From: Saccostrea echinata | Lineage: Eukaryota | Direction of reading: 5' to 3' | NCBI RefSeq assembly: GCF_033153115.1 | Contig: NW_026889803.1 | Coordinates: forward strand, 20,956,001 to 21,020,000 | DNA: 64,000 bases | Shown here: positions 17,071-18,288 of the stretch, piece after piece | Numbering within the stretch: position 1 is the first letter of the stretch | Layout: every line of letters starts with the position of its first letter | Translations under genes and position numbers: made by a program | The notes under the pieces: model-generated | What the model was told of the DNA's origin: nothing | Database searches by the model: none | What the model saw: only the letters and a program-made list of their open reading frames with translations

Positions 17071-18288
17071 ATGAATAAGTTCAGAAAACTTAAAAGAGTC
17101 CTATCTATGACTGGGATAATAATATGTTCACTACTTCTTATCCATATTAATTTGCCTTGGATGAAAGGATTTTTCCTACCAAATTACCCCCTGATTTTGA
17201 ACAATGCTAATGGAAATTCTGCAGCAGTCAAAGAAATGATGAAGATAAAAGATTTTTCTTCAAAATATGGAAACGGTTTTGTAAATTCACCAGAGGAGGT
17301 CATAGGAGTACCACTGAGAATGGAGGATATAACTTTTGAGGAAATTCAAAAATCTGGATGGATTGACACTGGAAAATATTCTCCAGATAATGAGCTTGAT
17401 TTTGTACCCCCTGTTCCAACATTTTCCGTTTATGATATTGTTTATCAATTAAAACCGAAAATTATGCGAAAATATTTAGCCCTCGATAAAAGAAAATATG
17501 AAAATTATAGCATTGTGATTCTTACCCCAATACATAATAGTGAAAATGATCTTGTGCAGTATGCACAGTTAATTAGTGAACTTGATTATCCAAAACACAA
17601 ACTTTCTATTGTATTTGGTGAAGATGGAAGTGAAGATCAAACACTCAAAGTTGGAAAAGATATTTTAAAAGAATTTCGCAAACAAGGATTTCAAAGGGCT
17701 GAAATTTTTCATTTTAACATATCGGGTCAAATAAGTGGGGATTGGAATAGCATTCATGACCAGGTGCTTCAACATATACGAAGAAGACATCTTGCCAAAG
17801 CACGCAACCTGCTTCTTAAAGTTGGCTTAAAAGATGAAGACTATGTGTTGTGGATTGATGCGGATGTTGGTGTACTTCCCTCTGACCTTATCCAACAGTT
17901 GATCTATGCAAACAAAGATGTTGTTGCTCCGTGTTGTTTATATAGAAAGGGTCAGTATACTAATGTTTATGACAAAAACACTTGGAGAGAAACAAAATAT
18001 TCTCTACAAGCACAAAAAGATCTCAGCAAAACACAGCTGGTTTTAGAAGGGTATGGACCCACAATCAGACTTTATTTACCTCACTTGAGGGGGGAGGGGA
18101 GGGTAGTCCCTCTTGATGGTGTAGGGGGTTGTAGTTTACTAGTCAAGTCAAAGTGCCATAAAAAGGGGCTTAAATTCCCGGAGGAGATTTTTCAGAATCA
18201 TATTGAAACTGAAGGACTAGCCAAGCTTGCCAAGAGTTTGGGATTTGGTGTTTACGGGATGCCATTTGTTGAAGTATATCATAAGTAA
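17071..18288 (+). CDS. Anp1/Mnn9/Van1-like glycosyltransferase (GT62-type, putative mannosyltransferase), type II membrane protein, intronless CDS
   Basis: 405-aa ORF: basic N-tail, TM segment at ~aa 10-30, GT-A fold motifs ILTP, RRRHLAKARNLLL, DxD (WIDADV), YDKNTW, LEGY, LDGVGG, IETEGLAKLAKSLG. These match hallmark motifs of fungal Mnn9/Anp1. Confidence 0.85.
   Translation: MNKFRKLKRVLSMTGIIICSLLLIHINLPWMKGFFLPNYPLILNNANGNSAAVKEMMKIKDFSSKYGNGFVNSPEEVIGVPLRMEDITFEEIQKSGWIDTGKYSPDNELDFVPPVPTFSVYDIVYQLKPKIMRKYLALDKRKYENYSIVILTPIHNSENDLVQYAQLISELDYPKHKLSIVFGEDGSEDQTLKVGKDILKEFRKQGFQRAEIFHFNISGQISGDWNSIHDQVLQHIRRRHLAKARNLLLKVGLKDEDYVLWIDADVGVLPSDLIQQLIYANKDVVAPCCLYRKGQYTNVYDKNTWRETKYSLQAQKDLSKTQLVLEGYGPTIRLYLPHLRGEGRVVPLDGVGGCSLLVKSKCHKKGLKFPEEIFQNHIETEGLAKLAKSLGFGVYGMPFVEVYHK

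Follow-up and report, generated by a model that had tools for sequence, protein, structure and literature searches.

Introduction

The only solved structure of a GT62 glycosyltransferase is that of Saccharomyces cerevisiae Mnn9 (3ZF8), a protein that forms part of both mannan polymerase I and mannan polymerase II. Paired with Van1, Mnn9 acts as an alpha-1,6-mannosyltransferase; its residues R209, D236, D280 and H389 are each needed for activity, a D236N protein is inactive, and its hairpin loop has been proposed to serve as a ruler or acceptor guide (PMC3787745). An Aspergillus GT62 enzyme is likewise reported to be an alpha-1,6-mannosyltransferase (PMC9769593). In a comparative study, genes of the corresponding Pfam family (Anp1, PF03452) "were only identified in fungi" (PMC5225481). 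RefSeq nevertheless labels the Haliotis, Pecten, Mizuhopecten, Argonauta and Branchiostoma orthologues of the gene described here "mannan polymerase ... mnn9/anp1-like", so that the term "undescribed system", used in the original prediction for this locus, was an overstatement. A full-text literature search found no paper describing an animal GT62.

Here we characterize a GT62 gene of the oyster Saccostrea echinata. Coordinates refer to the window that was analysed, a 64,000-nucleotide stretch of contig NW_026889803.1 (assembly GCF_033153115.1, positions 20,956,001 to 21,020,000, forward strand).

Results

Identity of the gene

An intact 405-aa open reading frame with an ATG start occupies 17071..18288 (+ strand, stop codon included). 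It is the sole frame of at least 80 aa within 16000-19500, and its length is far above chance expectation for DNA of about 33% GC. The Pfam search called for by the original prediction gave a match to Anp1 (PF03452) at E 3.9e-49 and 167.9 bits, far over the gathering cut-off of 28.8 bits, with residues 140-371 aligned to profile positions 15-261 of 263; an NCBIfam scan of the protein returned no informative match. Yeast Mnn9 (3zf8) is the top PDB match by sequence (E 1.9e-26, about 29-30% identity, alignment spanning oyster residues 146-404), and it also ranks first in Foldseek (E 1.1e-22, TM 0.79 per target length) for an AF2 model of the oyster protein with pLDDT 90 and pTM 0.81. The gene is confirmed as a GT62 (Anp1/Mnn9-family) member on an animal chromosome. 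The initial description, an intact 405-aa type-II protein with a DxD motif and Anp1/Mnn9 hallmarks, is borne out by the reading frame, Pfam, PDB and hydropathy results.

We rejected assignment to a metazoan glycosyltransferase of the COLGALT/PLOD type, the result that would have refuted the original prediction. The glycosyltransferase domains of COLGALT1 and LH3, of CAZy family GT25, have the generic GT-A fold and DxD region in common with the oyster protein, but their match is local and weak. By sequence, COLGALT1 reaches E ~5e-3 over 64 residues; by structure, it is the next Foldseek family after Mnn9, at E 4.6e-13, with TM 0.38-0.48 for the COLGALT1/LH3 domains. The E value for Mnn9 is better by some 20 orders of magnitude for sequence and some 10 for fold, and the oyster protein falls outside this group.

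Protein architecture and catalytic residues

The protein begins with a basic stretch (K3, R5, K6, K8, R9), predicted to form a cytoplasmic tail, ahead of a putative type-II signal anchor at residues 10-28 (17098..17154, + strand). The 19-residue Kyte-Doolittle maximum (2.14) falls on exactly these residues, within a helix at residues 2-35 of the AF2 model, and no further hydrophobic segment appears among the top windows. This N-terminus fits the type-II anchor topology typical of Golgi glycosyltransferases. The stem (residues 29-139; 17155..17487, + strand) is poorly conserved: it is gappy and variable in two alignments (A1 and A4), and its pLDDT drops under 50 over residues 36-50 and 65-72. 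The GT-A catalytic domain, delimited by the Pfam match and the Mnn9 alignment, takes up residues 140-405 (17488..18285, + strand), where pLDDT is mostly above 90.

Within this domain, the DxD metal/donor motif D263-A-D265 (17857..17865, + strand) aligns to D236-x-D238 of Mnn9, whose numbering is given as the structure chain index plus 90. In an alignment of 72 sequences, D263 is invariant and D265 is at least 90% conserved. The four essential residues of Mnn9, R209, D236, D280 and H389, correspond to oyster R237, D263, D301 and H404, all of them invariant in the 72 homologues; the first three line the mannose site of Mnn9. Across alignments A1 and A4, these positions and D265 are either invariant or conserved in at least 90% of sequences. 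The region aligned to the Mnn9 hairpin (I262-N283) is present, with model strands at 284-293 and 296-299, and is 6 residues shorter.

The oyster protein and Mnn9 are thus alike in their Anp1 domain, GT-A fold, type-II topology, DxD motif, essential Arg, Asp and His residues, C-terminal His metal ligand and beta-hairpin extension. They differ in overall sequence and hairpin length as given above and in their stems, which are unrelated, and in trees the oyster gene falls apart from the Dikarya-like group.

Transcript structure and genomic context

The GT62 gene is a transcribed oyster host gene. Contigs of four transcriptome-like runs cover 16979-18969 at identity of at least 99%, and the intergenic stretch 14288-16640 has no contig cover in these runs, whose RNA nature we take from splice joints and coverage gaps. 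In one run (X1), a 2013-nt contig carries 22 letters ahead of 16979 that match 16381-16402 with 1 mismatch, where 0 such matches are expected by chance. The CAG after 16402 fits both sides of this joint, and GTAAGT starts at 16406. A contig of a second run (X2) likewise begins at 16979, and the joint 16405>16982 itself comes from the one X1 contig.

The resulting gene model, on the + strand, has the 3' end of a non-coding first exon (5' UTR) at 16381..16405, with the transcription start at or upstream of 16381; a 576-nt spliceosomal intron in the 5' UTR at 16406..16981 (GTAAGT ... TTGTGTTACAG, GT..AG); and a second and last exon at 16982..18969, defined by contig coverage, that holds 89 nt of 5' UTR, the whole coding sequence and about 680 nt of 3' UTR. 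A polyadenylation signal, AATAAA, lies at 18950..18955, and in three runs the contigs stop at 18953-18969. The original statement that the gene is encoded without introns therefore stands for the coding sequence and fails for the gene, which has a spliced 5' UTR.

Five coding differences separate the window from the transcripts, three synonymous and two replacing residues (V10I and I236K). The gene was found in runs from two separate studies and sits 21 Mb into a chromosome-scale contig; its coding sequence has a GC content of 36% (28% at third codon positions), similar to the surrounding DNA. In a whole-genome family search the upstream neighbour, likewise on the + strand, proved to be a DNA_pol_phi (MYBBP1A-type) gene of several exons, with a GT..AG splice at 13755>14021, as expected from the earlier claim of an intron-rich gene on that side. 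Pfam searches with single exon-sized reading frames of the neighbour genes gave no match.

Family distribution and paralogues

The tree gathers sequences of Mollusca, Annelida and Nemertea into one clade (UFBoot 100 / SH-aLRT 99) that broadly tracks taxonomy, with bivalves, gastropods, cephalopods, a chiton, the annelids Owenia and Capitella, and the nemertean Lineus among its members. The original prediction spoke of a molluscan activity; with a clade of three phyla, the gene is not confined to molluscs. On the evidence of the tree, the family goes back to the common ancestor of these phyla. The clade holds old paralogues, and the S. echinata genome has two GT62 copies. The second, paralogue B, is an intact 361-aa reading frame on a separate contig (C77:763728-764405), 48% identical to the first, with a Pfam Anp1 score of 166.4 bits. 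In the tree it is a recent bivalve paralogue and not an orthologue of Van1 or Anp1; the duplication would have occurred later than the origin of the family, within pteriomorph bivalves. No intron interrupts the coding sequence of either oyster copy, and three environmental contigs likewise carry relatives as complete, uninterrupted reading frames.

Remoter homologues are spread over amphioxus, Capsaspora, early-diverging fungi and many bacteria. Among the matches that could be named, those from animals are limited to Mollusca, Annelida, Nemertea and Branchiostoma, with no cnidarian, sponge, echinoderm, ecdysozoan or vertebrate sequence; many other matches are nameless. The nearest named non-animal relatives are single-domain proteins of Halteromyces, Choanephora, Mortierella, Coemansia and Irineochytrium and Capsaspora CAOG_06684, at 36-38% identity. 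Early-diverging fungi and Capsaspora are the sister group of the lophotrochozoans in the maximum likelihood (ML) tree, a weak placement (56/68), yet form a well-supported clade of their own (95/96).

The Branchiostoma protein "mannan polymerase complex subunit mnn9-like" (XP_035670100, with orthologues in B. lanceolatum and B. belcheri) resembles the oyster protein in being an animal GT62 of similar length (Anp1 E 1.2e-55), but it is 36% identical to it and sits on a very long branch outside the lophotrochozoan clade. The amphioxus gene may have had a history of its own, since its product shares 40-43% identity with stand-alone Anp1 proteins of bacteria.

Bacterial fusions and an oyster GT32

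Fusion of an Anp1 domain to an Och1-like GT32 domain is frequent in marine bacteria. Such GT32-GT62 proteins of about 530 aa (Hoeflea, Nitratireductor, Mesorhizobium, Rhodobacteraceae, Amphritea), along with longer multi-GT proteins, have an Anp1 domain with all catalytic residues at 31-36% identity to the oyster protein. The fusion gene of Hoeflea poritis lies in a GT4 / GT32-GT62 / GT25 island; ten scanned reading frames neighbouring it include no GDP-mannose gene, which leaves the island uninformative on the donor.

The N-terminal Och1-like GT32 domain of the fusions has a homologue in the oyster. Unlike the bacterial single polypeptide, the oyster GT32 and GT62 are encoded by separate genes on different contigs, and the GT62 has a type-II anchor. 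The oyster GT32 is a single-exon 373-aa reading frame on contig C9 (PF04488, E 5.8e-19; Gb3_synth domain absent). Its best PDB match is Och1 (9n3s, E 1.1e-11, 47.7 bits), and against the GT32 domain of the fusions it shows 31-39% identity, with E down to 2.5e-44 and scores of at most 158 bits. A further resemblance is to a molluscan cluster that bears the automatic name "IMT1 family", IMT1 being an inositol-phosphoceramide mannosyltransferase. The oyster protein may belong either to the Och1 type or to the MIPC-synthase type of GT32. A six-frame, exon-by-exon search of the whole genome found no match at E <= 0.001 to GT34 Mnn10/Mnn11 (PF05637), the partners of Mnn9 in yeast, or to GT15 side-chain enzymes (PF01793), a weak negative given the exon-by-exon approach and control genomes that were equally matchless.

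Origin of the lophotrochozoan family

Horizontal transfer and patchy ancient retention, the hedged pair offered in the original prediction, are still the right options, since approximately unbiased (AU) tests accept both and fail to separate retention (p 0.40, with amphioxus) from ancient transfer (p 0.47, with bacterial fusions). The ML tree places the lophotrochozoans beside fungi plus Capsaspora, then amphioxus, with bacteria outside.

The first option is vertical descent from a GT62 of the opisthokont ancestor, which fungi, Capsaspora, amphioxus and lophotrochozoans would have retained while other animal lineages lost it many times over; in our judgement its truth is evenly balanced. The branching order of the ML tree agrees with it, and homologues are found in Capsaspora owczarzaki (P0191), in three Branchiostoma species and in chytrid, zoopagomycete and mucoromycete fungi. 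A clade of Lophotrochozoa and Branchiostoma is not rejected (p-AU 0.40), and the oyster protein scores 149-180 bits against fungal, Capsaspora and amphioxus sequences versus 116-144 bits against bacterial ones. However, support for the deep nodes is weak (56/68, 70/33), and adding Capsaspora to the Lophotrochozoa and Branchiostoma clade leads to marginal rejection (p-AU 0.037), in a test that the nameless sequences forced outside may bias. Many independent losses are required, and the animal matches that could be named are confined to the four groups given above. The intronless coding sequences of the two oyster copies and three environmental relatives, and an amphioxus protein as near to stand-alone bacterial proteins (40-43% identity) as to any eukaryote, also count against simple descent.

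The second option, a serious possibility to which we give somewhat less than even credence, is that the lophotrochozoan stem lineage received the gene once, long ago, by horizontal transfer. The donor would have been a bacterium, such as a marine carrier of a GT32-GT62 fusion, or else an unsampled microbial eukaryote. The 5' UTR intron, the Golgi anchor and the host-like base composition would then have been gained after the transfer. Coding sequences without introns across the family and the very patchy distribution in animals agree with such a transfer, and a clade of Lophotrochozoa with the bacterial fusions is not rejected, at a lnL difference of 0.6 (p-AU 0.47). The oyster GT32 is also much nearer to the GT32 domain of the fusions (up to 158 bits) than to yeast Och1 (47.7 bits), a one-sided comparison in that the solved yeast Och1 structure was the only fungal GT32 compared. 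Against transfer, no tree nests the lophotrochozoan clade within any donor group, no compositional trace is left in the coding sequence, and a fused bacterial donor would need gene fission as well. Crown Mucoromycota, which include the most similar named fungi, are disfavoured as donor, a sister or nested placement giving p-AU 0.041.

Recent transfer into oysters or molluscs, or assembly contamination, was suggested at first sight by a "fungal" family and an intronless coding sequence between intron-rich neighbours; we reject it as vanishingly improbable because the gene belongs to an old family of molluscs, annelids and ribbon worms that broadly follows taxonomy, a refuting outcome by the original prediction's own criterion, its nearest non-animal proteins are only 32-38% identical, and it has a spliced 5' UTR, host-like composition, a chromosome-scale context and contigs in the runs of two studies.

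Discussion

The analysis shows the sequence and family of the protein, its fold and conserved catalytic residues, the splicing and contig coverage of its gene, and its phylogeny; we read the locus as probably a transcribed gene for a catalytically competent Mnn9/Anp1-type GT62, a type-II secretory-pathway protein of an ancient lophotrochozoan family. From these observations we infer the location, donor, linkage, acceptor and partners of the enzyme. The most likely secretory-pathway site is the Golgi, where the GT-A domain would sit in the lumen on a variable stem, joined through the signal anchor to a short basic tail on the cytoplasmic side. By homology, the DxD motif and the C-terminal histidine would coordinate Mn2+ and, through it, a GDP-sugar. 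The enzyme would then transfer mannose by a retaining mechanism to a glycan acceptor, most probably forming an alpha-1,6 linkage, with donor and linkage extrapolated from proteins about 29-30% identical. The enzyme might work with paralogue B, as Mnn9 does with Van1 or Anp1. It might also work with the separately encoded Och1-like GT32, a partnership suggested because marine bacteria fuse both domains in one protein. The oyster has no cell wall, and the product therefore cannot be wall mannan.

It is rather unlikely, in our view, that the protein has kept the fold and metal site for a different chemistry, with another donor or linkage, or with a glycolipid acceptor (for example mannose-containing glycosphingolipids) in place of alpha-1,6 extension of N-glycans. 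Such a change would agree with the low identity to Mnn9, the shorter hairpin loop, the unrelated stem and the resemblance of the co-occurring GT32 to the "IMT1 family" cluster, as well as with the weak whole-genome negative for the remaining yeast outer-chain machinery (PF05637, PF01793). It is harder to square with the invariance of the residues matching R209, D236 and D280 in the Mnn9 mannose site, and the characterised GT62 enzymes, the yeast Mnn9-Van1 pair (PMC3787745) and the Aspergillus enzyme (PMC9769593), are reported to be alpha-1,6-mannosyltransferases.

Returning to mannosyl transfer of the Mnn9 type, a bolder proposal, speculative and on balance improbable, is that lophotrochozoans run a two-enzyme alpha-1,6-mannan-type pathway of Och1-like GT32 and Mnn9-like GT62, homologous to the start of the yeast outer chain and to the marine bacterial fusions. 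The glycan so made, carried by glycoproteins or glycolipids, would be a mannose polymer or oligomer as yet undescribed in animals. We know of no alpha-1,6-mannan-type glycan in molluscs. The oyster does encode both halves of the bacterial Och1-like/Mnn9-like fusion as separate genes, which offers a testable pairing toward the product.

The accepted distribution of GT62 is altered by these results: the family is old, intact, duplicated and transcribed in lophotrochozoans, and is found in amphioxus, Capsaspora and bacteria as well. Its history bears on the debate over gene loss versus gene transfer. For invertebrate glycobiology, including that of mucus, shell matrix, haemolymph glycoproteins and glycolipids, the gene points to a class of animal glycan that nobody has sought.

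Identity and catalytic residues of the encoded protein

The ATG-initiated open reading frame (ORF) at 17071-18288 (+) is the only ORF of at least 80 aa within 16000-19500, in surroundings of ~30-34% GC, and its 405-aa product is, as the original prediction held, an intact GT62 (Anp1/Mnn9) homolog. The Pfam Anp1 profile (PF03452) matches at E 3.9e-49 (167.9 bits against a cut-off of 28.8), and the best sequence match by far among solved structures is yeast Mnn9 (3zf8; E 1.9e-26, residues 146-404). An AlphaFold2 model computed from an alignment of 72 sequences (mean pLDDT 90) also returned 3zf8 as its top Foldseek match (E 1.1e-22, TM 0.79 per target length). 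A COLGALT/PLOD-type identity, the alternative raised alongside that prediction, can be rejected, since Mnn9 leads both searches: procollagen galactosyltransferase 1 (COLGALT1) matches only at E ~5e-3 across 64 residues in the solved-structure sequence search and lies ten orders of magnitude below 3zf8 in Foldseek.

A basic N-terminal tail (K3, R5, K6, K8, R9) precedes a hydrophobic segment (residues 10-28, Kyte-Doolittle mean 2.14), and the model has a helix at residues 2-35. This is the sequence pattern of a type-II signal anchor and agrees with the membrane topology proposed earlier. The anchor is followed by a stem (residues ~29-139), variable and of low model confidence, and a GT-A catalytic domain (residues 140-405).

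Activity of Mnn9 depends on each of R209, D236 (the first Asp of the DxD), D280, and H389, which is a ligand of Mn2+ (PMC3787745). With Mnn9 numbering taken as the 3zf8 chain index plus 90 (N146 being the D236N mutation and H299 being H389), these residues align to oyster R237, D263 (with D265), D301, and H404. Across two alignments, one of 15 and one of 72 homologues, these four are invariant and D265 is at least 90% conserved; the Mnn9-specific hairpin (I262-N283) is also present, 6 residues shorter. With all essential Mnn9 residues retained, this appears to be an active enzyme rather than a pseudoenzyme.

At window position 17777 the assembly has T where all four transcriptome-like runs compared with the window (X1-X4) have A, changing codon 236 from ATA to AAA (I236K); the assembly allele is unlike every transcriptome sampled. 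The site adjoins the essential R237, in a column that varies among homologues.

Transcription and genomic setting

The stretch was matched in five public runs from two studies, and contigs of four (X1-X4) were compared with 13500-19400. Judging from splice joints and coverage gaps, these contigs appear to derive from RNA and behave like transcript assemblies. A GT..AG joint in the upstream gene (13755>14021) appears in all four runs, 14288-16640 has no contig cover save traces (depth <0.5) in X1 at 15273-15666, and 16979-18969 is covered at 99% identity or more, with the transcripts ending 10-19 nt past the AATAAA at 18950-18955. In one contig of 2013 nt, 22 further letters stand ahead of 16979, and they match 16381-16402 with 1 mismatch (0 chance matches expected). 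As CAG fits either side of this joint, we place the junction at exon 1 ...16405 / GTAAGT...TTACAG / 16982... exon 2, so that the 5'UTR contains a canonical intron of 576 nt, its joint known from this one contig. The gene's description as intronless therefore stands for the coding sequence and fails for the gene as a whole.

The upstream neighbour is a DNA_pol_phi (MYBBP1A-type) gene split into several exons, two of them at 6085-6234 and 8511-8645, in addition to the spliced joint. The GT62 coding sequence has host-like composition (GC 36%, GC3 28%), and the window sits 21 Mb from the start of its contig, in an assembly of 923 Mb. The GT62 gene is a transcribed host gene, with contamination or recent insertion excluded by the splicing, transcript cover, composition, deep contig position, and spliced neighbour.

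Two tiny upstream ORFs, 17017-17028 (ATG CAG ACC TGA) and 17049-17054 (ATG TAG), lie in the exon-2 5'UTR ahead of the main ATG, which has A at -3. Elsewhere in the window, many unrelated contigs from all four runs pile up at 90-95% identity on a short tRNA-like stretch at 19264-19331 (loose ends ...GGGTAGCTCAGTCGGTAGAGC...), probably a tRNA-derived SINE. Three long ORFs of a ~50-aa repeated unit (KFIAPGSGVLVLGWGYIDHIVKVHYFFENLLLYSWVLFKQIKYIVMISK...) at 22226-23703 (+) gave no convincing Pfam match and are a tandem DNA repeat staying open by chance. A 313-aa ORF at 3705-4646 (-), without a Pfam match at E <= 0.01, lies inside the MYBBP1A-type gene span on the opposite strand.

Distribution of GT62 proteins

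A word-indexed search with the window protein found 91 homologues, the closest from Saccostrea cucullata (90% identical). Orthologues occur in bivalves (Pinctada, Mytilus, scallops, unionids, clams), gastropods (Haliotis, Patella, Lottia, Littorina, Babylonia, Nucella, Batillaria), the cephalopods Octopus and Argonauta, the chiton Liolophura (several copies), and the annelids Owenia and Capitella. An exhaustive HMMER search returned 1066 cluster representatives at E <= 1e-3 (152 at E <= 1e-30), the named ones including two paralogues in the nemertean Lineus longissimus; an older paralogue group is common to chiton and Argonauta.

The S. echinata genome has exactly two GT62 matches. The second copy, paralogue B (L002:1198-2283, +; Pfam match G000:C77:763728-764405), is a single-exon ORF of 361 aa, counted from a listed TTG start codon; it is 48% identical to the window protein, keeps all catalytic residues, and has an orthologue in S. 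cucullata (LOC134265496). Three lophotrochozoan-type metagenome contigs (43-50% identity), some of which could derive from RNA, contain complete uninterrupted ORFs of 419, 433, and 376 aa, from anchor through C-terminal His, with no other sizeable ORFs in their flanks. Together with the two oyster copies, they suggest that the family as a whole has its coding sequence in one exon.

Outside Lophotrochozoa, named fungal relatives are early-diverging (Mucoromycota, Coemansia, the chytrid Irineochytrium), the other named eukaryotes are the filasterean Capsaspora owczarzaki and three Branchiostoma species, and the Protein Atlas also has Anp1 clusters in Oomycota and Zoopagomycota. Bacterial relatives are of two kinds: short stand-alone Anp1-domain proteins in many phyla, and proteins in which an Och1-like GT32 domain (PF04488) is fused to the Anp1 domain (Hoeflea, Nitratireductor, Mesorhizobium, Rhodobacteraceae, Amphritea), sometimes within larger multi-glycosyltransferase proteins. 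BLAST scores of the oyster protein slightly favor eukaryotes (152-180 bits against named fungal, Capsaspora, and amphioxus proteins; 116-144 against bacterial ones).

Origin of the lophotrochozoan genes

We built a FastTree phylogeny of 233 catalytic domains and an IQ-TREE phylogeny of 72 (LG+C20+F+G4 PMSF). Both place all lophotrochozoan sequences in one clade (UFBoot 100 / SH-aLRT 99) with rough taxonomic grouping within it (pteriomorph/heterodont bivalves, caenogastropods, veti- and patellogastropods, cephalopods, chitons, annelids, nemerteans). The two oyster copies arose when the gene duplicated within pteriomorph bivalves. The trees thus date the gene to before the divergence of molluscs, annelids, and nemerteans. 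Named fungi form their own clade (98/97), and a wider clade of these fungi with Capsaspora and unnamed sequences has support of 95/96. Deeper nodes are weak: Lophotrochozoa group with fungi plus Capsaspora at 56/68, and amphioxus comes next at 70/33. In a 370-sequence FastTree rooted on stand-alone bacterial proteins, the lophotrochozoan clade stays clean and its sister group mixes amphioxus, Capsaspora, fungi, and bacterial fusions.

The original prediction offered horizontal transfer or patchy ancient retention, and ancient forms of both stand. AU tests were run on groups named beforehand. We give an even chance to retention since an opisthokont ancestor, followed by many losses. It accords with a Lophotrochozoa+Branchiostoma group, which was not rejected (lnL difference 0.14, p 0.40), but adding Capsaspora was marginally rejected (p 0.037), in a test that forced possibly holozoan unnamed sequences outside. 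One ancient transfer into the stem lineage of Lophotrochozoa, which we judge slightly short of even, is consistent with a Lophotrochozoa+bacterial fusions group, likewise not rejected (lnL difference 0.6, p 0.47). The tests do not separate these two origins. A crown-fungal donor is disfavored by the marginal rejection of Lophotrochozoa+Mucoromycota (p 0.041), and recent transfer is excluded by the 100/99 clade spanning three phyla.

The amphioxus "mnn9-like" proteins (P0181, B. floridae; P0276, B. lanceolatum; P0277, B. belcheri) are conserved on a very long branch. They are 40-43% identical to stand-alone bacterial Anp1 proteins and 41% to Capsaspora, compared with 33-37% to lophotrochozoans, and may have a separate evolutionary history.

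A possible GT32 partner

A profile search of the S. echinata genome found no match to GT34 (Mnn10/11) or GT15, a weak negative, and five to PF04488. The best GT32 ORF (L003:1159-2280, +, within G000:C9:29561146-29564400; PF04488 E 5.8e-19) is a single exon of 373 aa without a Gb3_synth domain, and its best PDB match is yeast Och1 (E 1.1e-11). BLASTP aligned it with the GT32 domains of the bacterial fusion proteins at 31-39% identity (E from 1e-30 down to 2.5e-44, at most 158 bits). Full-length fusions are found in Nitratireductor, Mesorhizobium, and Hoeflea poritis, the last matching Och1 in its N-terminal half and Mnn9 in its C-terminal half. The Hoeflea gene (NZ_JAPJZH010000006.1, locus L008:6812-10381; gene 7980-9596) is flanked by a divergent GT4 gene on one side and an overlapping GT25 gene on the other, the three forming a small glycosyltransferase island.

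Both halves are joined in one bacterial protein, whereas the oyster has them as separate genes. This is a domain-fusion (Rosetta-stone) hint that oyster GT32 and GT62 may act in one pathway, like yeast Och1 and Mnn9. As a lead, drawn from comparison with the bacterial fusions and, among fungal proteins, with yeast Och1, the oyster GT32 is a possible partner of GT62. In the Atlas it falls in a large cluster made up mostly of molluscan proteins and also resembles a molluscan cluster auto-named "IMT1 family." IMT1 is an inositol-phosphoceramide mannosyltransferase, and this resemblance makes a glycolipid acceptor possible.

Predicted activity and significance

By homology to Mnn9 (PMC3787745) and to the Aspergillus GT62 alpha-1,6-mannosyltransferase (PMC9769593), the oyster protein would work in the Golgi lumen as a retaining enzyme that depends on Mn2+ and takes mannose from GDP-mannose. 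The linkage would probably be alpha-1,6. A shift of donor, linkage, or acceptor relative to Mnn9 is the main functional rival and seems unlikely. Because animals have no cell wall, the product of a Mnn9-like activity would be a protein- or lipid-linked glycan.

A comparative study reported PF03452 genes only in fungi (PMC5225481), and our literature search turned up no publication on GT62 in a mollusc or any other animal. Automatic RefSeq annotation has already pointed to the homology in many species (e.g. "mannan polymerase complex subunit mnn9-like" for several of the orthologues). What is new is an uncharacterised representative, in animals, of a known enzyme family, more widespread and older there than expected, rather than a new kind of system. 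Its interest would be greater if the GT32 and GT62 pair does make a mannan-type glycan in animals.
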